In this document: one piece after another, positions 25,985 through 48,953 of the stretch
Numbering within the stretch: the stretch's first letter is position 1
How the letters are laid out: each line of letters opens with the position of its first letter
The notes under the pieces: model-generated
What the model was told of the DNA's origin: nothing
What the model saw: the letters and a program-made list of their open reading frames with translations, nothing else
Databases searched by the model: none
DNA from: Entomortierella parvispora E1425
Taxonomy: Eukaryota; Fungi; Mortierellomycota
Direction: 5' to 3'
DNA: 64,000 bases
Assembly: GCA_020891255.1 (NCBI GenBank)
Contig: BQFW01000011.1
Span: 1,302,001-1,366,000, forward strand
Position numbers and translations under genes: made by a program

Positions 25985-27849
25985 ATGGATTCTCGAGAAC
26001 TCGGGTTCCCTGGATATATGGTCTACGCAGGTCTTTTGGCCTCCATGACCTCACTCTCGATCGGCTATGTGATCGGTTCACCAAACGTACCAGAGTCAGC
26101 AATCCGTGGCAAGAACGGCGATTGTGGCCCAGATCCATACACTGTCCACAATGGATTTCCTAATTGCTTTGAGTTTGCAGATCTTCTTTGGGTAAGTGCA
26201 GTAACAATGGCGCAGTCCATGTTCATTTGGAATGATTTTTTTGGGCAAAGTTGGCCCTAAAATCGAAGATCGACAAGTCCGTGGGTTGAGACACTCAATA
26301 TCTGTGCCAGTGTGTTTGTTATCATGATAGCACAACAGACAAAAAAAGCCCGTTGGGAGTCAACCTTAACATGCAAAAGAGACAAGGGCCAGACGGGTGG
26401 ATGAGAGCCTATGTTTCATGAGATCTGGGGGGACCGATCGTCTTGGGAAGGGGGTTGGTTGCGGAGGTCCGTGGGGGATTAACGTTGATAGACACTCGTG
26501 CAACTGGCATTAACGTTTTTGCATGTATCTGTTTGTGTTTCTAGGGCTTCGCTGTCGGTTCCTTCTGTTTAGGTGCCTTGGTCGGAGGACTCACTGGCGG
26601 ATCAGTACAGAACATGTTTGGCCGTATCAGGACCATGTTTATCAGTAACCTGTTCTTCATTCTTGGAGCCCTCTTGCTTGGATTGACCTACCACCAAGCG
26701 CAGTTTATTGTCGGTCGTATCATCATTGGTTTCGCTTGCGGTCTTGGAGGTGTCGTCGCCCCAACCTACTTGGGCGAGATCTCAACAATCAAGGGTCGCG
26801 GCACAATGGGAACAATGTACCAGCTTTTGATCGTCACTGGAATTTTGATCTCCAACTTGATCGGTTTGGGTTTGAGCTCCCCCCCTCTCTGGCGTATCCT
26901 CTTGGCCATCAACGGTATCCCCGCCTTGATCCAGTTGTTCATGTTGCCCTCTTTGGTCGAATCCCCTCGTTACCTCGTCTCCAAGAACCGTCTTCAGGAA
27001 GCCCGTGTCTCCCTTCAAAAGTTGCGTGGAGCAGGAAACAACATTGAGCACGAGTTCTCGGATATGGTCCATTTGCTTTTGGGACGGGACGACAACACCG
27101 CAGCTGTCAACCAGGATTCTGCCTTTGACGAAGCCAACTACAAGACTGACCCCGAGGCCCCTGTCACTGCAACCGCCTCTGGAGCACCTAGTCCTTCCCA
27201 CTACAGCATTGGACGTCTCTTCACCTCCGAGTGCAAAGGATTGGCCGTTATCGGTATCTTGATCCATTTCTTCCAGCAGGCCTCTGGTATCAACGGTTTG
27301 ATCTATTACTCGACCTCTTTCCTCGGAGACGTCTTTGGTGCTGGTAACTCAAAGTACATCACCGTCGGTGTCTCGTCCTGCAATCTGTTGTCGACCTTGG
27401 CCTCAGTGTTTTTGATTGACAAGACGGGTCGTCGCACCTTGTTGTTGATCTCGCTTGGCGGTGTGGCCGCCTCCTCGATTCTTTTGGTCATTGGTGCCTA
27501 CGCTGATGTCGGTGTCCTGGTCGTGGTCGCGGTTTTCCTTTACACTGCCTTCTTTGCCATTGGATTGGGTCCCATCCCTTGGTTGCTGTTGTCAGAGCTC
27601 TTGCCCACCTATGCCCTTTCCCCTGCCTCCTCCATCGCCACGGCCGTCAACTGGGGTACCAACTTTGTGGTCGGATTGGTGTTCCCTTCCTTGAACAGGG
27701 GTCTCGGCAATGGTACCTTTATCCTTTTCGCCTCTTTGTCCGCCCTTGGGTTCTTTTACACCTGGTACTTTATCCCCGAAACTCGGGCACGTTCCATTGA
27801 GGAGATCATGGCCGAGAAGGGTGTCGCCCCTCGGTCCGACTACAACTAA
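25985..27849 (+). CDS. MFS sugar porter (GLUT-like hexose transporter), ~503 aa; join(25985..26191,26545..27849)
   Basis: Phase-0 intron TGG|GTAAGT...CTAG|GGC. Motifs GRIIIGFACG, PTYLGEIS, VESPRYL, QQASGIN, KTGRRTLLL, GLGPIPWLLLSE, FIPETR. Confidence 0.93.
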
Positions 27850-28236: not shown

Positions 28237-31408
<3,172 letters not shown>

Positions 31409-37400: not shown

Positions 37401-38079
37401 GATCAGCAACAGAGAAAAACTTTTTTTTGTGTTTGCCACATTGCAAAGAGGGAAAAAGAAGACAAAAGAGAGGAAACTGAAGAAAGGGAAACACACCCCT
37501 GCCGCGTCCCTTGCCATGCATTGCATTTGGCCGGGAAGAGGAACACAAGCAACGCAATCAACGCAAGCAACACAATCAACCAACACAAAGGCAAGGCAAA
37601 GAGAGAAGGGGCAGGGATAGGAAACAATGGGATCGACTCGACTCCCTCCATGGACCGACCCGCACTCTCGCACGCCTCACGCTCTCGTCCAGAAACAAAA
37701 CAGGGGGGCACAGACCCATCGCGAAAGAGAGAAGACTTAGAAGAAGAAGAGGGAAAAGGGACAGCACTCACACACGCACACACGCACGCACGCACACGCA
37801 CATACACACAACAACAACAACAACAAACACATAGACCCAGAATAAAATGAATGATAAAACTAAACTAGTCGCATCTTTCCATTATGAATAGTTTTATTCC
37901 CCCACTGCACACTTCCCCCTCCCTTCATCGACGCCATTCACACTTCTTTCCCTTCTTCTTCCTCCTCCTCCTCCTCCTCCTCCTTTACATTCACATTCAC
38001 ACCTTCATTTTCCCTTGACTCTCATTTCCTTCCTTCCTTCCTTCCTTCCTTCCTTCATTCGCTCTCTCTCTCCCTTCCG

Positions 38080-38110
<31 letters not shown>

Positions 38111-38332
38111 TCCTCACTCGTTCCTCCTCCCTCCCTTCGCCCCGCACTCTCCTTTCATCTCATTCGCTCCTCTATTTTTTCTTTTTTTCTTTTCCTCTCT
38201 CTCTTCTCCCCTTTTCCTCCTCCTCCTCCTCCTCCTCCTCCTCCCCCCTCCACCGTCCTCTTTCCCCCCCCCCCCCGCATCGCTCCATCCTCATCCCACA
38301 CCCCCTCTTCAAAAACCACTCCCTCACATCCA
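31409..38332. promoter_or_regulatory. 6.9-kb divergent intergenic region between SKN7-like and NIK1-like genes, rich in poly-A, (CA)n, (CT)n and polypyrimidine tracts
   Basis: No credible spliced CDS found; ORF-track entries here are low-complexity. Long pyrimidine tract ~37900-38330 precedes the kinase ATG. Confidence 0.6.
31853..31878 (+). other. Canonical G-quadruplex-forming motif GGGGGG-TT-GGGGG-T-GGGG-AT-GGGGGG upstream of the Skn7-like gene
   Basis: Four G-runs of 4-6 with 1-2 nt loops, read directly. Folding in vivo is not shown. Confidence 0.6.
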
Positions 38333-41300
38333 ATGTCCACATTGGCCGAGGCCTACATCTGCCATGTAGGCACCGTCCTGGACCTGCTTGTGCAGCCAAG
38401 GGAGGTCGACATCCCCACAGACTCGTTTGCATCCAAATCACCCCTGCCTCTGGACTTTGTCGATGCCTCCACGCCCGACTACATTCAAAAGGTCGATCTT
38501 ACGCTGCAGCGGGTCGTCCAGAAGGTCTTTGCGATGGAGCACGAGCTGGCCCGACACCGACAGCAACTCAAGCAGTTCCCCATCTCGTCGCTCGTGTCCG
38601 ACATCACCCTGGCGCCGCCCATCCTCACGCCTCCCGTCGACTCGCTCTCGCCCCCTGCCTCGGCCTCGTCCCGCTGGAGCGAGGGCCACTGGGAGTTTGT
38701 GAACCACGCTGCGACCTCGTCCTCGGTCCAGCTCGAGCGGCCTCTGCACCAGCTCACATCCCTGACGGCCCTGTCCCTGTCGCAGGCAAGGTCATCGATC
38801 CATACCCCCACCTCCACCACCTCCTCTGCATCCTCCTCGTATGCCTCTGCATCCTCAGACTTCGTGCCGGGCATGGATGTCGACTTGATGACTACGACCA
38901 CCTCCGCCGCAACAGAGGTAAATTGAAACCGGACAATGGTCATTGTGCGCATAACCATGGATCTAAACCCAACTTGTTTTCTTTTTTTTTGTCTTCTTTT
39001 TTACTAACAATGAACCATGGGCACCCATCCAGGCTCTCCCCTCTCCCATTACTGCGTCCTCGTCGACGGCTTCGTCTACTTCAATAGCCTCCAGAGACCT
39101 CTTTGCATCGTCTGCACTTCCCCCCTCCTATTCTTCCGCCACTAGCACCTCCATGGTTCCCGTATCAAAGACCCGCGCACTCTCACCTACATCATTATCA
39201 GTAGCAGCCCCGCCAACAATAGCCACAGCTGCTGCAGGAGAGTTCATCCCTTGCGCACAATGTATCCGCAACTGTGCATTGGTGGCTACCGCAGTGATGC
39301 GTGGAGACTTGAGTGTCAGGATCGAGTGCGATAACCCCGTCTGTCGTCAGTCCGCCTTGAATTCGTCCATTAACGAGATGGTCTCCAAGCTGTCCAATTT
39401 CACGGAGGAGGTCATCCGGGTGGCAGCACAGGGTATCGAGGGCAAGCTGGGCGTGCAGGCGACTTTGGAAGACGAGCGCGGTATCTGGAAGGAGTTTGTC
39501 ATCCACCTCAACACCATGACGGTCGGACACTCTGAGCAGGTGCGTGACATTGCGTCTGTGTGTACTGCCGTCGCGCACGGCGATCTCAGTCAAAAGATTA
39601 AGGTCGATGTCAAGGGAGAGACGCTTGTTCTCAAGAACACGATCAATACCATGGGTAAGTGCAACCTCTGCAACTGCTTCGGACCCTTGGCTGGTCACGA
39701 AGATCCTTTCACTTCTCAGTTTTCTGTTTTTTCTTTGGAGGATGCTCGATCATGGGTGCTGTTTTCCCTTTGTTCCCTTTCATCCCATTACTGGTCCCTC
39801 GTACTGACCCTCTTTTCTTCTTTTCTTTTCCTTTCTCCCTATTCCCCTGCATTCCTGCAATAACGATCAAACTCACGTCATGCTCTGGGCACGATTCTTT
39901 GGACGCTTGCTTTGCCTCGACTGTTTTGGATATATTTGTTCATTGTTCTTTTTTGCACCACAGTCGATCAACTTCGGTCCTTTTCGTTCGAGGTCACCCG
40001 TGTGGCCCATGAAGTCGGCACAGAAGGAAAGCTGGGCGGACAAGCCCATGTGAAGGGTGTCGATGGAACCTGGAAGGAGCTGACGGATAACGTCAACACT
40101 ATGGCCGAGAACCTCACAGCGCAGGTGCGAGATATTGCCAGTGTCAGTAAGGCCGTCGCCAAGGGAGACCTCAGCAAAAAGATTTCGGTCGAAGTCAAAG
40201 GAGAAATGATGGACCTGAAGCATACTATCAACACCATGGTGGACCAGCTCCAGGAGTTTGCCACAGAGGTGTCCCGTGTCAGTTTGGAAGTCGGAACTGA
40301 GGGCAAGTTGGGTGGTCAGGCTCACGTCAAGGATGTCAGCGGTACCTGGAAGGAACTCACCGACAATGTGAACTTGATGGCCTCCAATTTGACAGGACAG
40401 GTGCGTGATATTGCTACAGTCTGTAAAGCTGTCGCTTGCGGTGACTTGACCAAGAAGGTCCTCGTACCAGTACAAGGTGAAATCTTGGAGCTCAAGGAAA
40501 CGATGAACACCATGGTGGACCAACTCAGTATTTTTGCCGCCGAGGTCACCCGTGTCGCTCGTGAGGTCGGCACTGAAGGAAAGCTCGGAGGCCAGGCCGA
40601 GGTCGAAGGCGTGGACGGCACCTGGAAGGAACTCACGGACAATGTAAATACCATGGCTGCCAACTTGACTGCGCAAGTCCGAGATATCGCTAGTGTCAGT
40701 AAGGCCGTCGCCAAAGGAGATCTCAGCAAGAAGATTTCCGTCGAAGTCAAGGGAGAGATGATGGACCTCAAGCACACAATCAACATCATGGTGGACCAAC
40801 TTCAAGAATTCGCCACAGAGGTCTCTCGTGTGAGTTTAGAGGTCGGAACCGAAGGCAAACTTGGCGGTCAAGCCATAGTCAAGGACGTCAGCGGTACTTG
40901 GAAAGAGCTCACAGACAATGTCAATACCATGGCTTCAAATCTGACCACGCAGGTGCGATCGATTGCTGAGGTCACCACAGCCGTCGCCTGTGGTGATCTC
41001 AGCAAAACGATCGATGTTCAGGCCCAGGGAGAAATCTCGGAACTGAAACTCACGGTCAATTCTATGGTGGAACAACTTCGAACTTTTGCCGCTGAGGTCA
41101 CTCGTGTCGCCCGCGAGGTCGGTACAGAAGGAAAACTGGGTGGACAGGCCCACGTCAAGGGCGTGGACGGTACCTGGAAGGAGTTGACCGACAATGTCAA
41201 CACCATGGCCGAGAATCTAACGGCTCAGGTGCGAGATATCGCCAGTGTCAGTAAGGCTGTCGCCAAGGGAGACCTAAGTAAGAAGATTTCCGTCGAAGTC

Positions 41301-44300
41301 AAAGGAGAAATGATGGACCTGAAGCATACTATCAACACCATGGTGGACCAACTCCAGGAATTCGCCACTGAAGTATCCCGTGTGAGTTTGGAAGTCGGTA
41401 CTGAAGGAAAACTGGGCGGTCAAGCCGTGGTCAAGGATGTCAGTGGAACCTGGAAAGAGTTGACCGACAATGTCAACACGATGGCCTCCAATTTGACGAC
41501 CCAGGTACGATCCATTGCTGAAGTCACAACGGCTGTTGCCTGCGGTGACCTCAGTAAGACGATTGATGTCCAAGCTCAGGGAGAAATCTCTGAACTGAAG
41601 CTCACCGTCAACTCCATGGTGGAACAACTTCGAACATTCGCTGCCGAAGTCACTCGTGTCGCCCGCGAGGTCGGTACAGAAGGAAAGTTGGGTGGACAAG
41701 CTCATGTCAAGGATGTGGATGGTGTCTGGAAGGAACTTACCGGAAACGTGAACACCATGGCTGCCAACCTGACAACTCAGGTGCGATCCATTGCTGAGGT
41801 CACTACCGCCGTCGCCTGCGGTGACCTTAGTAAGACGATTGACGTTCAAGCCCAAGGAGAGATCTCAGAACTCAAATTGACTGTCAATTCCATGGTGGAG
41901 CAACTTCGAACATTCGCTGCCGAGGTTACCCGTGTCGCCCGCGAGGTCGGTACAGAAGGAAAGTTGGGTGGACAGGCTCATGTCAAGGATGTCGATGGTG
42001 TCTGGAAAGAACTTACAGGAAATGTCAACACCATGGCTGCCAACTTGACAACGCAGGTGCGATCCATTGCTGAAGTCACCACCGCCGTCGCCTGCGGTGA
42101 CCTTAGTAAGACGATTGACGTCCAAGCCCAAGGAGAAATCTCAGAACTCAAGTTGACCGTCAATTCCATGGTGGAGCAGCTCAGGACATTCGCCGCCGAG
42201 GTCACACGTGTTGCCCGCGAGGTCGGTACCGAGGGTAAACTTGGTGGTCAGGCTCAAGTTAAGGGTGTCGACGGAGTGTGGAAGGAGCTCACAGGAAACG
42301 TCAACACCATGGCTGCCAATCTAACAACCCAGGTGCGATCTATTGCTGAAGTCACAACTGCCGTCGCGTGCGGTGATTTGAGTAAGACCATTGACGTCCA
42401 AGCCCAAGGAGAGATCTCGGAGCTCAAGCTCACTGTAAACTCGATGGTGGAGCAGCTCAGGACGTTCGCCGCAGAGGTCACTCGTGTCGCTCGTGAGGTC
42501 GGAACCGAAGGTCGTCTCGGAGGACAGGCCGAAGTCAAGGGTGTCGATGGTACCTGGAAAGAGTTGACGGATAATGTCAACACCATGGCTGCCAACCTCA
42601 CCGCCCAGGTGCGAGATATCGCCAGTGTCAGTAAGGCTGTCGCCAAGGGAGACCTGAGTAAGAAGATTTCCGTTGAGGTCAAGGGTGAGATGATGGACCT
42701 CAAGCACACGATCAACATCATGGTGGACCAGCTTCAAGAGTTTGCCACTGAGGTCACACGTGTGAGTTTGGAAGTCGGAACCGAGGGTAAACTTGGCGGT
42801 CAAGCCGATGTCAAGGATGTTAGCGGAACATGGAAAGAGCTCACAGACAATGTCAACACAATGGCCGCTAATCTCACCACCCAAGTGCGATCCATCGCCG
42901 AGGTGACAACAGCTGTCGCTTGTGGTGATTTGAGTAAAACTATTGACGTCCAAGCTCAAGGAGAGATCTCGGAGCTCAAGCTCACTGTAAACTCGATGGT
43001 GGAGCAGCTCAGGACGTTCGCTGCTGAGGTCACACGTGTCGCTCGTGAGGTCGGTACCGAGGGTAAACTTGGAGGTCAAGCCGAGGTCGAGGATGTCGGA
43101 GGCACGTGGAAGGAACTCACGGAGAATGTCAACACCATGGCCTCCAATTTGACAACCCAAGTGCGAGATATCGCTGACGTCTCTAAAGCCGTCGCCAAGG
43201 GAGACTTGACCAAGAAGATCACAGTCAATGTCAAGGGCGAGATCTTGGACTTGAAGAACACAATCAACTCCATGGTGGACCAGCTTTCAACCTTTGCCGC
43301 CGAGGTCACCCGTGTCGCCCGTGAGGTCGGAACGGAAGGAAAGCTCGGTGGTCAAGCTGAGGTCGAAGACATCGGAGGTACCTGGAAGGAGCTTACAGAA
43401 AATGTCAATACCATGGCGTCCAACTTGACGACGCAGGTGCGTGATATCGCAGATGTTTCCAAGGCTGTGGCTAGAGGAGACTTGACGCAAAAGATTTCAG
43501 TCGACGCCAAGGGAGAGATTCTTGATCTGAAGAACACGATCAATATCATGGTAAGGATACAATGCTGTCAACTATGACACCTTTCGTACATGCATGTGTC
43601 CATGATTGTAATCCGCAATTGCTAACGATTTCAGCTCTTTTTTTTCAAATAACATTCTTAGGTTGATCAACTTTCCACTTTCTCTGCCGAAGTAACTCGT
43701 GTCGCCCGTGAGGTCGGTACTGAGGGTAAACTCGGTGGTCAAGCTGAAGTCGAAGATGTCGGAGGTACTTGGAAGGAACTCACGGACAATGTCAACACCA
43801 TGGCATCCAACTTGACGACGCAGGTGCGTGATATTGCCGATGTGTCCAAGGCCGTCGCCAAAGGAGACTTGACCAAGAAGATTACAGTCAACGTCAAGGG
43901 TGAGATGATGGATCTCAAACATACCATCAACACCATGGTGGACCAACTTCAAGAGTTTGCAACAGAGGTGTCTCGTGTCAGTTTGGAAGTCGGAACTGAG
44001 GGCAAGTTGGGCGGTCAAGCCAATGTTCGGAACGTTGACGGTGTCTGGAAAGAACTGACAGGAAACGTCAACACCATGGCCGCCAACTTGACGACTCAGG
44101 TGCGATCCATTGCTGAGGTTACGACTGCTGTTGCGTGTGGTGATCTTAGTAAGACCATTGATGTTCAAGCCCAGGGAGAGATTTCGGAGCTCAAGCTCAC
44201 TGTCAACTCGATGGTGGAGCAGCTACGAACTTTTGCCGCTGAGGTGACACGTGTTGCCCGTGAAGTCGGAACTGAGGGTAAACTTGGTGGTCAGGCCCAT

Positions 44301-47300
44301 GTTAAGGATGTGGACGGTGTCTGGAAAGAACTCACCGGAAACGTCAACACCATGGCCGCCAACTTGACGACTCAGGTGCGATCCATTGCTGAGGTTACGA
44401 CTGCTGTTGCGTGTGGTGATCTTAGTAAGACCATTGATGTCCAAGCCCAGGGAGAGATTTCGGAGCTCAAGCTCACTGTTAACTCGATGGTGGAGCAGCT
44501 ACGAACTTTTGCCGCTGAGGTGACACGTGTCGCGCGTGAGGTCGGCACGGAAGGAAAGCTCGGCGGACAGGCTCATGTCAAGGGCGTCGATGGAACTTGG
44601 AAGGAGCTCACGGATAACGTCAACACTATGGCCGAGAATCTAACGGCGCAAGTGCGAGACATTGCCAGCGTCAGTAAAGCTGTCGCCAAGGGCGATCTCA
44701 GCAAAAAGATTTCCGTCGAGGTCAAGGGTGAGATGATGGATCTTAAGCACACGATCAACACCATGGTGGACCAGCTTCAGGAATTTGCCACTGAGGTATC
44801 CCGTGTCAGTTTGGAAGTCGGCACGGAAGGAAAACTTGGTGGACAAGCCGTTGTCAAGGATGTCAGCGGCACCTGGAAGGAGTTGACCGACAATGTCAAC
44901 ACCATGGCCTCCAATTTGACGACCCAGGTGCGATCCATTGCTGAAGTCACAACTGCTGTCGCTTGTGGTGACCTTAGTAAGACCATTGACGTCCAGGCTC
45001 AGGGAGAGATTTCAGAGCTCAAGTTGACAGTCAATTCCATGGTGGAACAACTTCGTACATTTGCGGCCGAGGTCACTCGTGTTGCCCGTGAAGTAGGAAC
45101 AGAGGGTCGACTGGGTGGACAGGCCGAGGTCAAGGGTGTCGATGGTACTTGGAAAGAATTGACCGACAATGTCAACACCATGGCTGCCAACCTCACCGCC
45201 CAGGTGCGAGATATCGCCAGTGTCAGTAAGGCTGTCGCCAAGGGAGACCTAAGTAAGAAGATTTCCGTCGAGGTCAAGGGTGAGATGATGGACCTCAAGC
45301 ATACGATCAATACCATGGTGGACCAGCTCCAGGAATTCGCCACTGAGGTTTCCCGTGTCAGTTTGGAAGTCGGCACAGAAGGAAAACTTGGTGGACAAGC
45401 TGTGGTCAAGGATGTCAGCGGAACCTGGAAGGAATTGACTGACAACGTCAACACCATGGCCTCCAACTTGACAACTCAAGTGCGATCCATCGCCGAGGTG
45501 ACAACAGCTGTCGCTTGTGGCGACCTTAGTAAAACCATCGATGTCCAGGCTCAGGGAGAGATCTCAGAGTTGAAGCTCACTGTCAATTCCATGGTGGAGC
45601 AGCTCAGGACGTTCGCCGCTGAGGTCACACGTGTCGCTCGTGAAGTCGGTACCGAGGGTAAACTTGGTGGTCAGGCTCAGGTCAAGGGTGTTGATGGAGT
45701 GTGGAAGGAACTTACCGGAAACGTCAACACCATGGCTGCCAACCTAACGACCCAGGTGCGATCCATCGCCGAAGTTACTACAGCTGTGGCCTGCGGAGAT
45801 CTTAGCAAGACCATTGATGTTCTGGCTCAAGGTGAAATTTCAGAGCTCAAGCTGACGGTCAATTCCATGGTGGAGCAACTTCGAACCTTTGCCGCTGAGG
45901 TCACCCGTGTTGCCCGTGAAGTAGGAACCGAAGGTCGTCTCGGAGGACAGGCCGAGGTCAAGGGTGTCGATGGTACCTGGAAAGAGTTGACGGATAATGT
46001 CAACACCATGGCTGCCAACCTCACCGCCCAGGTGCGAGATATCGCCAGTGTCAGTAAGGCCGTCGCCAAGGGAGACCTGAGTAAGAAGATTTCCGTCGAG
46101 GTCAAGGGTGAGATGATGGACCTCAAGCACACGATCAACATCATGGTGGACCAGCTTCAAGAGTTTGCCACTGAGGTCACACGTGTGAGTTTGGAAGTCG
46201 GAACCGAGGGCAAACTCGGAGGTCAAGCCGTGGTCAAGGATGTCAGTGGAACATGGAAGGAGCTTACCGACAATGTCAACACCATGGCGTCGAACTTGAC
46301 AACCCAAGTGCGATCTATTGCCGAAGTTACCACTGCTGTCGCTTGTGGCGATCTCAGTAAGACGATTGACGTCCAGGCTCAGGGAGAAATCTCGGAACTG
46401 AAGCTGACTGTCAACTCGATGGTGGAGCAACTTCGAACATTTGCCGCTGAGGTCACCCGTGTCGCTCGTGAGGTCGGTACTGAGGGCAAACTTGGAGGTC
46501 AAGCCGAGGTCGAGGATGTCGGAGGCACGTGGAAGGAACTCACGGAGAATGTCAACACCATGGCTGCTAATTTGACGACCCAGGTGCGAGATATTGCCGA
46601 TGTTTCTAAAGCCGTCGCCAAGGGAGACTTGACAAAGAAGATTACAGTCAACGTCAAGGGTGAGATCTTGGATTTGAAGAACACGATCAACTCCATGGTG
46701 GACCAGCTTTCGACCTTTGCCTATGAAGTCACCCGTGTGGCTCGAGAGGTCGGAACCGAAGGAAAACTTGGAGTGCAAGCCCAGGTCCGAGATGTCCGTG
46801 GAACTTGGAAGGAGATCACCTCCAACGTGAACACGATGGCGTCCAACTTGACTGCTCAGGTGCGTGCCTTTGCCTCAATCTCGACTGCGGCGACAGATGG
46901 TGACTTCACTCAGTTCATCACGGTCGAAGCCTCGGGTGAGATGGACTCTTTGAAGACCAAGATCAACCAGATGGTCTACAACCTGCGTGAAAGTATTCAA
47001 AAGAACACTGCTGCCCGTGAGGCAGCTGAATTGGCCAACCGATCCAAGTCCGAGTTCCTTGCAAACATGTCCCATGAGATCAGGTATGGCTTTTTTTTTT
47101 GTGTTTAATCCTTAACGTGTTCATTTCTTGCTACAGCTACTTATCGACTCTCATTTCTTTTGCAAACTCCCTTAGAACTCCTATGAACGGTATTATTGGA
47201 ATGACTAGTCTGACTCTGGAGACAGAGTTGACTCGACAGCAACGAGAGAACTTGGTGATTGTTAGTCACCTTGCTCACTCGCTTTTGACCATTATTGACG

Positions 47301-48953
47301 ATATCCTGGATATTTCGAAGAGTAAGGATCTTGGATGTGCAATTGAATAGAACTGTGCATGGAACATGGAACTAACGCATTGTTTTTGTCTTTGACTTTA
47401 GTCGAAGCCGGTAAAATGACTATCGAGCAAGCACCATTCTCGCTCCGGACGCAAGCGTTTGGTGTACTTAGGACGCTTGCTGTGAAGGCGCACCAAAAGA
47501 AACTGGATCTGATCTACAATGTCCACAACGAATTCCCAGATCAACTTGTCGGTGATCCTTTGCGTCTCCGTCAAGTCATCACCAATCTCATTGGAAATGC
47601 CATCAAGTTTACGACGGAGGGAAGTGTGGTCCTGGACTGTGTCTGCAAAAACAAGACTGATGTCGGAGTGGAGCTCCAGTTCTGTGTCTCGGACACGGGT
47701 ATTGGTATCCAGAGCGACAAGATTGAGGTGGTGTTTGATACCTTCTGTCAGGCCGATGGATCGACAACACGCAAGTACGGTGGTACCGGCTTGGGTCTCT
47801 CAATCTCAAAACGTCTTGTGACGTTGATGGGAGGCGATCTCTGGGTCAACAGTACGTTCGGCAAGGGCTCGCAGTTCTTCTTTACGGTACGCTTCAACAC
47901 CGGTACGATGTCAGTGGAGCAGATCAACTTGAAGACGAAGCCGTATGTTGGACGCCATATTCTTTACATGGGCACGATGAAGGACGAGGTCATCTCGAAC
48001 TCTGTGATGCGGACGCTCGAGAACTTGAAATTCAAGGCAACTCATGTCACGTCTCTGGAACAAGCTGGCGCTTTGATGCCCAACTCTGGCAGTCAGGAAA
48101 AGTCCATGTTTGATGTGGTGATTGTGGACAATGTCAAGGACATCCGCAAGATCAAGGAGATTGCCATGCTGCGCTTCCTGCCCATTGTGTTGTTGTCGAT
48201 GACGACACCCTATATCAGCATGAAGGTGTGCCAGGAGCTCGGAATCGCCAGTTACTTTAACCCACCGGTTCAATTACCCGACTTGATGAACGCACTGCTG
48301 CCGGCGTTTGAGTCTGCGTCGGCGCTTCCCTCGGATGCAGAGCATGCGATCCCATTGCACATTCTGTTGGCCGAGGACAATGTGGTGAACCAGAAGTTGG
48401 CAGTCAGGATTTTGGAGAAGTTTGGACACAAGGTGACGATTGTGTCGAACGGCAAGATGGCGGTCGAGTGCTATGATAGCAAGCATTTCGATCTGATCCT
48501 CATGGATGTGCAGATGCCAATCATGGGAGGATTCGAGGCGACGCAGGAGATCCGAAAGCTGGAGACCTTGAAGGGCAGGAACGACCACTTGCCCATCATT
48601 GCCTTGACTGCCCACGCCATGATTGGAGATAGAGAGAAGTGTCTAGCCGCTGGCATGGTACGTGGTTTTTTTATCTTGAATTTTGTCCCTTTTTTTTTTT
48701 TTTTTTTCCGTCTTTCTGATGCCACAATGTTCCTGACTTACTCATCTGGATATCATTTCTTCATTGTTCATAGGACGAGTACATCACGAAGCCGCTGCGC
48801 GTCAACGAGTTGATTGCGACGATCAACAAGTTCCCGCCCAAGAACTGTCCTGATCTGGCCCAGCATGATCCTTACTATGAATACCCCAACATGCGGTCCA
48901 GTTACAGTCCTCCCCAAGATACCAAGTCCAATTTTTTGTTCAAGAAGTCTTAA
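38333..48953 (+). CDS. NIK1: Group III (Nik1/Os-1-type) cytosolic hybrid histidine kinase with ~26 tandem 92-aa HAMP repeats, ~3265 aa; join(38333..38917,39033..39654,39964..43550,43662..47083,47176..47321,47402..48657,48774..48953)
   Basis: Seven phase-consistent exons (9798 nt). 25 VGTEG(K/R)LG motifs plus [10 protein letters not shown]-box [11 protein letters not shown]|TPMNG, N-box [11 protein letters not shown]1 DTGIGI, G2 [10 protein letters not shown], a degenerate first receiver, and a canonical receiver ILLAEDN...LILMDVQMP...LTAH...M|DEYITKP. No TM segment seen. Confidence 0.95.
39360..46990 (+). repeat. Coding tandem array of 276-bp (92-aa) HAMP repeat units, interrupted by two introns
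   Basis: Exon 39964..43550 is 3587 nt, i.e. 13 x 276 minus 1. Units recur at a 276-bp period with mostly synonymous differences. Confidence 0.97.

Follow-up and report, generated by a model that had tools for sequence, protein, structure and literature searches.

We have identified a seven-exon gene at positions 38333-48953 (+ strand) of the window, the 64,000-nt stretch of Entomortierella parvispora DNA that was analyzed, as encoding a hybrid histidine kinase with an array of 26 tandem 92-aa HAMP units. We think it very likely that this is the E. parvispora ortholog of the group III kinases (NIK1/Os-1/TcsC/Drk1 type), intact, transcribed, and with the architecture, mechanism and evolution proposed below. 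Arrays of similar length were found in most zygomycete orthologs, and array length has been shown to be a property of the clade rather than a peculiarity of the E. parvispora gene.

Gene structure and transcription

The window is identical to contig BQFW01000011.1 of assembly GCA_020891255.1 (locus L005). The gene has the extent given by the sequence-only reading and, when spliced at GT..AG sites, encodes 3265 aa. A single open frame of 3265 codons runs from the ATG at 38333 to the TAA at 48951-48953, with no internal stops. The spliced translation is identical to the NCBI/UniRef entry 'osomolarity two-component system, sensor histidine kinase NIK1 [Entomortierella parvispora]' (P0188 in our survey), so the kinase gene is already annotated as NIK1 of this species. 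A divergent Skn7-like gene is its neighbor. The features of the gene are as follows.

38333..48953, + strand: whole gene, group III hybrid histidine kinase (open spliced frame; same as the NCBI NIK1 model)
38333..38917, + strand: exon 1 (aa 1-195), N-terminal helices and onset of the disordered linker (AlphaFold2 model)
38918..39032, + strand: intron 1, GT..AG (sequence and frame; same as the NCBI model)
39033..39654, + strand: exon 2 (aa 196-402), remaining linker, first (capping) HAMP and unit 1
39249..39395, + strand: first HAMP (aa 268-316), putative canonical D1-type (model helices, conserved Cys)
39252-39347, + strand: Cys motif C269-x2-C272...C294-x5-C300 in the first HAMP
39381..46976, + strand: array of 26 units (aa 312-2703), split by introns 2 and 3 (92-aa spacing, Tandem Repeats Finder, Pfam, 9trk match)
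39655..39963, + strand: intron 2, GT..AG, between units 1 and 2 (sequence and frame)
39964..43550, + strand: exon 3, units 2-14
43551..43661, + strand: intron 3, between units 14 and 15 (spliced X1 contig)
43662..47083, + strand: exon 4, units 15-26, kinase linker and H-box
47043..47412, + strand: HisKA/DHp (aa 2726-2791), across exons 4-6 (Pfam PF00512)
47073-47075, + strand: H-box His2736, in exon 4
47084..47175, + strand: intron 4, GT..AG, 92 nt (X1 contig)
47176-47321, + strand: exon 5
47322..47401, + strand: intron 5, GT..AG, 80 nt (X1 contig)
47402-48657, + strand: exon 6
47551..47895, + strand: HATPase_c (aa 2838-2952), with N, G1, F and G2 boxes (Pfam, box motifs)
48361..48824, + strand: receiver domain (aa 3108-3223), across intron 6 (Pfam PF00072)
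48505-48507, + strand: phospho-acceptor Asp3156 of the receiver
48658..48773, + strand: intron 6, GT..AG, 116 nt (X1 joint, weak)
48774-48953, + strand: exon 7

Contigs of public sequencing runs were mapped over positions 43000-48953, and exons 1-3 and introns 1-2 therefore rest on the open frame, the splice consensus, conservation in orthologs and the identical NCBI model. No run listed for 43000-48953 was recorded as RNA. We infer that run X1, recorded as 'DNA?', is RNA because its contigs are spliced. These contigs join exons 3 and 4, 4 and 5, and 5 and 6 as modeled, with no mismatches. Intron 3 was skipped by a mismatch-free contig of 682 nt, the shorter side of which covers 244 nt, and was retained in run X2, which is from the same sample as X1. 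Introns 4 and 5 were both skipped, at GT..AG, by one contig of 1852 nt. The joint between exons 6 and 7 is weak; it skips 116 nt at GT..AG and has 28 nt on its shorter side. X1 depth was continuous across all array bins in 43000-46976, and the gene is intact and transcribed.

There were no well supported joints that skip repeat units in the contigs over 43000-48953, at a resolution beyond which minor isoforms would lie. Run X6, from a distant relative, gave joints that leave out 2332 and 1828 nt; with a depth of 8.3 and sides 26-29 nt long, these were attributed to cross-mapping. Run X3, from a strain ~96-97% identical, covers the array; the differences in exon 3 that were examined by codon position were almost all at third positions.

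The array consists of 26 di-HAMP units

The repeats are regular in both DNA and protein. Tandem Repeats Finder reported two arrays with a period of 276 nt, one at 39989-43441 (12.5 copies, 74% matches, score 2381) and one at 43698-46864 (11.5 copies, 73%, score 2218). The motif G[TVI]WKE occurs 26 times in the protein, and all spacings are exactly 92 aa, giving an array of 26 x 92 = 2392 aa. Unit 1 is in exon 2, units 2-14 are in exon 3, and units 15-26 are in exon 4, exactly the 1, 13 and 12 units of ~92 aa that had been counted from the sequence alone. Pfam detected 1, 13 and 11-12 HAMP stretches in these exons, with matches to HAMP and HAMP_2. Matches of the repeat to other Pfam families, such as ATG17_like, IL10 and Spectrin, had no individually significant stretch and were set aside as summed coiled-coil repeat noise. 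Among units 2-25, 54 of the 92 columns are invariant. In 12 of the 26 units, the canonical HAMP carries a Cys, always at the same position.

The units are di-HAMP modules, each with a non-canonical HAMP of 46 aa followed by a canonical HAMP of 46 aa; Pfam HAMP matches only every second domain. An AlphaFold2 model of aa 1-420 (monomer, pTM 0.37; read for secondary structure and disorder only) shows, from aa 270 on, helices of ~30 residues that alternate with connectors of ~14 residues. With the capping HAMP, the 26 modules make a total of about 53 HAMP domains.

The repeating modules follow the layout described for kinase-type poly-HAMP arrays, D1 + (C-D2)n (PMC13446029), with a putative D1 in first position. 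The array matches the 6-HAMP crystal structure of Myxococcus xanthus AskA (9trk) with E=1.7e-80, and each of units 2-25 shares 70-78% identity with an AskA unit (73-78% for most of them). All 26 units have G-x-W-K-E, keeping the interface Trp and the junction Gly as in kinase-type poly-HAMP arrays. AskA (MXAN_0712; 9trj/9trk; PMC13446029) likewise has repeated non-canonical/canonical modules, there behind a capping canonical HAMP; it has 21 HAMPs (1 + 10 modules) compared to ~53 in the E. parvispora kinase, and its kinase core lies very far from that of the fungal protein. In bacterial arrays a GAF domain comes next (PMC13446029), and the modules are often nearly identical in sequence, whereas the E. 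parvispora kinase has no GAF domain and the nucleotide sequences of its units are old and diverged. The top Foldseek matches of the first three modeled HAMPs were to the poly-HAMP of Pseudomonas aeruginosa Aer2 (PDB 3LNR, 4I3M; probability 0.95-1.0, ~146 aligned columns). Aer2 shares concatenated HAMPs with continuous helices; it differs in being of the chemoreceptor type, with only 3 + 2 HAMPs, another output, and 14-17% sequence identity to the E. parvispora kinase.

Units are under strong purifying selection

Most of the divergence between units is silent. Differences between units fall at codon position 3 in 65% of cases, and protein-identical units are 81-95% identical in nucleotide sequence, differing at 14-49 synonymous sites. 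Among these, dN/dS is 0.000-0.033 and dS is 0.28-2.7. Purifying selection on the protein sequence of the array units is strong, and the earlier proposal of mainly synonymous differences under such selection is borne out (dN/dS ~0.00-0.03). Units 7 and 8 had been cited as protein-identical. This holds when units are counted within exon 3, where the pair corresponds to units 8 and 9 of the whole gene (100% identical in protein, with 18 nucleotide differences, 17 of them at third positions); units 7 and 8 of the whole gene are 87% identical.

RIP-like mutation is not supported as a source of the synonymous divergence: the synonymous differences comprise 6207 transitions and 3712 transversions, which is no extreme transition bias. 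No recombination hotspot was seen within the unit; mean pairwise nucleotide identity along it is flat, at 0.70-0.82.

The output domains are intact and of group III type

In the spliced protein (aa 2690-3265), Pfam detected HisKA (68 bits), HATPase_c (98.9 bits) and Response_reg (100.7 bits). The phospho-acceptors His2736 and Asp3156 and the H, N, G1, F and G2 boxes are all present, and a linker or pseudo-receiver region of ~155 aa lies between the ATPase and receiver domains. No convincing transmembrane helix was found: the highest Kyte-Doolittle 19-residue mean, 1.66, is within a HisKA helix, and there is no separate hydrophobic segment. Both the intact HisKA/HATPase/REC output and the lack of a convincing transmembrane helix agree with the first description. 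There was no Pfam match to a GAF domain, and unit 26 leads straight into the DHp. The bacterial poly-HAMP matches carry PF13185/PF01590, and the fungal poly-HAMP form is a known GAF-less variant.

Fungal group III kinases (Neurospora crassa Os-1/Nik-1, Candida albicans Nik1, Aspergillus fumigatus TcsC, Blastomyces dermatitidis Drk1, Botrytis cinerea Bos1) are likewise soluble, have N-terminal 92-aa HAMP repeats, and share the output order: HisKA with its H-box straight after the repeats, HATPase_c, a pseudo-receiver-like linker, and receiver. We built a tree of the H-box-to-ATPase region from 34 proteins, with one ascomycete and no other fungal histidine kinase groups. The fungal cores, including Armillaria 'related to nik-1 (Os-1p)' and Vermiconidia 'histidine kinase osmosensor', were separated from those of the bacterial poly-HAMP kinases with an SH-aLRT of 100. 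The placement of the core in the fungal nik-1-type group, together with the matching domain order, agrees with the original assignment to group III. The literature that we found contained no biochemical or genetic work on the E. parvispora kinase or any zygomycete ortholog.

The N-terminus and the first HAMP

In the AlphaFold2 model, N-terminal helices at aa 4-20 and 49-80 (pLDDT ~70-76) precede a disordered, S/T/A/P-rich linker of ~175 aa (aa 89-263, pLDDT below 50). The region of helix 49-80 is conserved in the ortholog alignment; exon 1 had no Pfam match. The first HAMP is modeled as helices 270-284 and 303-330 (pLDDT ~90), with a HAMP-like helix-connector-helix at aa 270-316. It aligns with the first HAMP of AskA in the 9trj/9trk matches, but Pfam HAMP is below threshold there.

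Among the proteins compared, the CxxC...Cx5C motif in the first HAMP is specific to zygomycetes. Across 26 zygomycete orthologs C269, C272 and C294 do not vary, and the motif was absent from all Dikarya and bacterial proteins examined.

Long arrays are common in zygomycete kinases

We counted units in all proteins with one unit HMM. Complete Mortierellomycotina orthologs have 21-30 units (median 23), Mucorales orthologs 12-26 (most 20-24), Kickxellomycotina 21-32 and Basidiobolus 18-20. Some Basidiomycota have 16-27, including Dacrymycetes with 24-27 (Dacryopinax 25, Calocera 24-27). Nik-1-type Dikarya kinases have 5-6 (Armillaria nik-1-like 6, Vermiconidia 5, Puccinia 6), and the bacterial proteins retrieved have 8-18. 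One protein survey was limited to lengths of 1289-4102 aa and would have missed short zygomycete paralogs.

Some individual arrays are longer than that of E. parvispora. Certain species carry two paralogs, among them Mortierella alpina with 30 units (3638 aa) and 23 units, and Linnemannia zychae has 28 (3308 aa). A Coemansia sp. protein of 4598 aa has 32, as does Kickxella. Actinomortierella ambigua (3295 aa) and Helicostylum pulchrum (3218 aa) each have 26, L. elongata has 22-23 in four strains, and M. claussenii has 21. A direct DNA check of the arrays of M. alpina, M. claussenii and A. ambigua located all 77 units as contiguous 264-nt coding stretches.

The zygomycete orthologs share the architecture and the 92-aa register, and their kinase cores are up to 96% identical. 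Across Mortierellaceae genera, the end and middle units (A-B-C-D ... H-I-J-K ... H-L) are positionally orthologous, and only the number and order of internal units vary. Three near-invariant unit types (E, F and G) have been gained and lost in two internal zones.

The sequence-only reading had taken the array for an exceptional, roughly four-fold elongation and very long arrays for a mostly bacterial trait. Neither view survives these counts: 21-30 units are ordinary in Mortierellomycotina and 12-26 in Mucorales, and the longest arrays retrieved are fungal (up to 32 units). As about 25 repeats is the ordinary state in related fungi, and 20-32 units are usual in zygomycete kinases, the array is not a novelty. 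In reviews, group III kinases carry "multiple" HAMPs, usually five or six (PMC13452588, PMC6324907), with six repeats in TcsC and five in DhNik1 (PMC13452588). On giant arrays in Mortierella, Mucorales or Coemansia, the literature held general statements only.

Alternative explanations

A tandem array with a 276-nt period could be inflated or mis-joined in assembly, and no single read or contig spans the whole array (the longest pieces are ≤1852 nt). Every unit has its own nucleotide sequence, however (closest pair 95% identical and none above, mean ~73%), which leaves no near-identical copies to collapse or expand. Over 9.8 kb the frame stays unbroken, the tested part is tiled by contigs of three runs from at least two samples with no mismatches (X1, X2) or strain-level differences (X3), and independent assemblies of other genera have orthologs with 21-30 units and the same end units. 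An assembly artefact is thus extremely improbable, as had been argued at the outset. It is equally hard to credit that the gene is a decaying or non-functional relic whose repeats are no longer relevant, given the 3265-codon open frame, dN/dS of 0.00-0.03 between units with saturated dS, strain differences that are mostly at third positions, spliced transcripts, and the presence of all boxes and the receiver Asp.

The contrast with TcsC (six repeats), DhNik1 (five) and the Dikarya proteins counted here (Armillaria 6, Vermiconidia 5, Puccinia 6) would favor a lineage-specific, unusually elongated sensor. With 20-32 units common in zygomycetes by the one-HMM survey, and three ortholog arrays confirmed in DNA, this seems very unlikely. 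A recently acquired bacterial poly-HAMP kinase outside true group III would account for units mostly 73-78% identical to Myxococcus AskA and for the high rank of bacterial proteins in searches. Against it are the six spliceosomal introns, a core that groups with fungi on a very long branch from all nine bacterial proteins (SH-aLRT 100), the lack of the GAF domain of bacterial kinase-type arrays (PMC13446029), and orthologs throughout the zygomycete lineages with conserved end-unit order. We consider such a transfer highly improbable.

Proposed mechanism

By analogy with relatives (PMC13452588, PMC6433957, PMC13446029), the E. parvispora group III kinase would be a soluble homodimer, a dimeric state taken from characterized relatives. 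Its HAMP array would form one continuous four-helix coiled-coil rod, which, from ~30-residue helices each spanning two HAMPs, may be ~0.1 micrometer long. The packing state of the rod would set the C-terminal core as kinase or phosphatase, and the core would act on a Ypd1 -> Ssk1/Skn7 phosphorelay that feeds into the HOG MAP-kinase pathway. Group III kinases of fungi confer osmotic responses and sensitivity to phenylpyrroles and dicarboximides. The roles suggested in the sequence-only reading, in which the array might tune gain or threshold or act as a mechanical or crowding sensor, are speculative.

Three linked readings go further and are rather doubtful. The zygomycete CxxC...Cx5C cluster, at the distal tip of the rod, might be a metal or redox/aldehyde input site that the Dikarya examined lack. 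The Cys in 12 of 26 units might be sentinel thiols, with the array integrating chemical stress cooperatively. The long array might be ancestral in fungi, and the 5-7-unit Dikarya kinases reduced.

Significance

As a discovery, the gene carries little weight, being an annotated NIK1 ortholog, and arrays of "dozens" of HAMP domains have already been described (PMC13446029). The context added here, without counterpart in the reviews (PMC13452588, PMC6324907), is that 16-32 di-HAMP units are usual in Mortierellomycotina, Mucoromycotina, Kickxellomycotina and some Basidiomycota. Also added are the fungal origin of the longest arrays retrieved and the gain and loss of E, F and G units between fixed end units. 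The natural series of 5 to 32 units on closely related cores is a comparative resource for the role of array length in HAMP signaling and in phenylpyrrole fungicide action.

Gene model and identity of the kinase

We found that seven exons spliced at GT..AG sites give a frame of 3265 codons with 0 internal stops. The exons, each on the + strand with an open frame and GT..AG splicing, are as follows.

38333-38917, + strand, exon 1
39033-39654, + strand, exon 2
39964-43550, + strand, exon 3
43662-47083, + strand, exon 4
47176-47321, + strand, exon 5
47402-48657, + strand, exon 6
48774-48953, + strand, exon 7

Tandem Repeats Finder detected two arrays with a period of 276 nt, one at 39989-43441 (12.5 copies, 74% matches, score 2381) and one at 43698-46864 (11.5 copies, 73%), and translation showed that the HAMP-like repeats are encoded by two long + strand ORFs. 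The motif G[TVI]WKE occurs 26 times in the spliced protein, with all spacings exactly 92 residues. By this count exon 2 holds one unit, exon 3 holds 13 and exon 4 holds 12, the distribution proposed in the sequence-only reading, and Pfam matched HAMP or HAMP_2 in 1 + 13 + 11-12 stretches. The same reading described an intact output module and no transmembrane helix, and both descriptions hold. Pfam identified HisKA, HATPase_c and Response_reg in the spliced C-terminus, and His2736, Asp3156 and the N, G1, F and G2 boxes were all located. There is no convincing transmembrane segment in the protein, because the peak of Kyte-Doolittle hydrophobicity over 19 residues (1.66) falls on the HisKA helix. 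Microsatellites, (TCC)n, (TTCC)n and (CT)n with a C-rich tract, lie directly upstream of the start codon (37960-38260), a stretch that is likely 5' UTR or promoter.

The spliced translation matches P0188, the public NIK1 protein of E. parvispora (NCBI/UniRef), at every residue, and the P0188 locus in GCA_020891255.1 (BQFW01000011.1) is identical to the window. The gene is therefore already annotated with this exact model in public databases, and is not new.

Integrity and transcription of the array

Nucleotide identity among units 2-25 ranges from 65 to 95%, with no pair above 95%, and each copy is unique and assemblable. We compared contigs of four public sequencing runs with positions 43000-48953. 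Contigs of one run, X1, skip intron 3 (43551-43661), intron 4 (47084-47175) and intron 5 (47322-47401) with 0 mismatches, the shorter side of the joint being 244, 148 and 148 nt, respectively; intron 6 (48658-48773) is also skipped, with weaker support (shorter side, 28 nt). The joints fall exactly on the modelled GT..AG sites. Run X2, from the same sample, keeps intron 3. None of the public runs listed for 43000-48953 is labelled RNA. Although X1 is recorded as 'DNA?', its contigs lack four GT..AG introns, and it probably represents a transcriptome. Within 43000-48953, depth in X1 is unbroken through every bin of the array, and its contigs contain no well-supported joints that skip units. The array is also covered in X3, a run from a diverged strain that is approximately 96-97% identical; of the listed differences in exon 3 that were checked by codon position, all but one were at third positions. 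The array is not an assembly artefact, as had been argued from the divergence of its units. The gene is transcribed and encodes an intact hybrid kinase in which every catalytic motif is present and the poly-HAMP sensor region is very long.

Selection on the units and turnover of the array

Codon position 3 takes 65% of all differences among units 2-25, and Nei-Gojobori estimates for the units give dS of 0.28-2.7 and dN/dS of 0.000-0.033, in support of the purifying selection proposed earlier. Several units have the same protein sequence, yet are old at the DNA level: units 6 and 18 (84% nucleotide identity), units 7, 19 and 21 (85-90%), units 8, 9 and 17 (81-93%) and units 11 and 23 (95%). The units previously singled out as protein-identical, 7 and 8 when counted within exon 3, are units 8 and 9 of the whole gene; they differ at 18 nucleotides, 17 of them at third positions. 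A RIP-like process is not indicated, because the ratio of transitions to transversions (6207:3712) is unremarkable.

Clustered at ≥95% protein identity, the units read A B C D E F E G G G F E H I J K G F E F E G F E H L. Other Mortierellaceae retain both ends and the central part of this series (B C D ... H I J K ... H L) and vary in the number of E, F and G units, in two zones. For A, C, J, K and L, the closest nucleotide relative is the unit that occupies the corresponding position in other genera (75-85% nucleotide, 89-100% amino acid identity), and B has a positional match in M. alpina only. Internal E, F and G units are closest to paralogs in the same genome (83-95% nucleotide identity, compared to 74-85% for units of other genera). 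This pattern indicates ongoing birth and death of the internal units, or else conversion among neighbours, under near-absolute protein constraint. Introns 2 (39655-39963) and 3 lie at the same point relative to the repeat unit, after ...NTM/NIM, with a one-nucleotide offset. Judging from unit spacing, which is 355 and 389 nt at the I/J junction of the M. alpina and M. claussenii loci compared to 276 nt elsewhere, the intron between I and J is in the same place in these species.

Phylogeny of the kinase core

We built a tree from the H-box-to-ATPase region of 34 proteins, including nine bacterial poly-HAMP kinases. The protein groups with six other Mortierellaceae sequences (SH-aLRT 100), and all the fungal proteins, among them Armillaria "related to nik-1 (Os-1p)" and the "histidine kinase osmosensor" of the ascomycete Vermiconidia, stand opposite the nine bacterial kinases (SH-aLRT 100). 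The tree, the domain order and the absence of a GAF domain jointly support the earlier assignment to the fungal group III kinases. The branch between fungal and bacterial cores is very long (3.9 changes per column). Units 2-25 are 70-78% identical, mostly 73-78%, to a di-HAMP unit of AskA, a poly-HAMP kinase of Myxococcus xanthus. Conservation of the array would far exceed that of the output module, unless array and output module have separate histories.

Two neighbouring genes were identified.

~28237-31044, - strand, Skn7-like response regulator gene (HSF_DNA-bind, 110 bits, and Response_reg, split over two ORFs)
26578-27849, + strand, ORF of a sugar-transporter gene fragment (Sugar_tr/MFS_1, 293 bits) flanking the Skn7-like gene

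The Skn7-like gene is divergent from the kinase and ~7 kb upstream. M. alpina shares this arrangement. In Linnemannia elongata no Skn7-like neighbour was seen within 10 kb, and in Circinella none within 6 kb.

Architecture and candidate cysteine sites

The array matches 9trk, a crystal structure that covers HAMPs 1-6 of AskA, at E=1.7e-80. An AlphaFold2 model of aa 1-420, made from 26 orthologs, has helices at aa 4-20 and 49-80, disorder at aa 89-263 (pLDDT <50), and, from aa 270 onward, regular helices of ~30 residues with connectors of ~14 residues (pLDDT ~90); in the PDB, the model most resembles the Aer2 poly-HAMP structures. From the 9trk match and this helix series, the architecture is one putative canonical HAMP as a cap, followed by 26 modules (non-canonical + canonical), for ~53 HAMPs. 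AskA has the same plan with 1 + 10 modules, extended here to 1 + 26. Because each ~30-residue helix spans two HAMPs, helix geometry alone would predict a rod ~110-130 nm long.

The capping HAMP contains the motif C269-x2-C272...C294-x5-C300 (aa 269-300, exon 2, 39252-39347). C269, C272 and C294 are shared by all of 26 zygomycete orthologs. Every member of the Mortierellaceae examined has the full motif, as do most Mucorales and Coemansia; it is absent from every Dikarya and bacterial poly-HAMP kinase examined. In a HAMP, helix 1 begins close to where the connector ends, and the four cysteines could therefore form a candidate site for metal binding or redox sensing at the distal end of the rod. 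In 12 of the 26 units, the canonical HAMP also has a cysteine, always at the same position ('AVACGDLS').

By analogy with characterised relatives, the protein would be a soluble dimer in which the HAMP rod sets the kinase/phosphatase switch on Ypd1, upstream of HOG (PMC13452588), and adjacent HAMPs may alternate in packing state, as in the "gearbox" model (PMC13446029). The HAMP cysteines may confer sensitivity to thiol-reactive aldehydes, for which C392 of Drk1 is a precedent (PMC6433957). These results speak neither for nor against the earlier proposal that the extra length may tune gain or threshold, or act mechanically.

Array length across fungi and bacteria

We counted full units in database proteins with an HMM built from the 26 units. 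Proteins came from an exhaustive HMMER search, a cluster look-up and a word-indexed search, the last limited to proteins of 1289-4102 aa, a range that short paralogs would escape.

Full units per protein

Mortierella alpina: 30 and 23
Linnemannia zychae: 28
Actinomortierella ambigua: 26
M. hygrophila, L. hyalina: 23
L. elongata (four strains): 22-23
M. claussenii: 21
Mucorales: 12-26 (Helicostylum 26; most 20-24)
Kickxellomycotina: Coemansia (4598 aa) 32; Kickxella 32; Dimargaris 23; Dispira (partial) 21
Basidiobolus: 18-20
Spizellomyces: 11
Dacrymycetes: 24-27
Mycena: 17-20
Dikarya, nik-1-type: 5-6 (Armillaria 6, Puccinia 6, Vermiconidia 5)
Bacteria: 8-18

The two M. alpina counts are from group III paralogs (P0179 and P0226, respectively). 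A check of gene models in M. alpina, M. claussenii and A. ambigua found 77 of 77 units as uninterrupted coding DNA. The kinase tree pairs Armillaria (6 units) with Mycena (20 units) as sister taxa, so length is labile in Dikarya too.

The array had been put forward as exceptional in length. For the clade it is not: the median in Mortierellomycotina, the first six entries above, is 23 units (range 21-30), and long arrays are ordinary in related fungi, which removes the claim to novelty. Five or six HAMPs are described as typical of group III kinases (PMC13452588), or their number is given simply as "a variable number" (PMC6324907), and none of the texts found in our literature search states unit numbers for zygomycetes. 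The remaining value of the finding lies in the clade-wide series of array lengths and in the Cys-rich capping HAMP.
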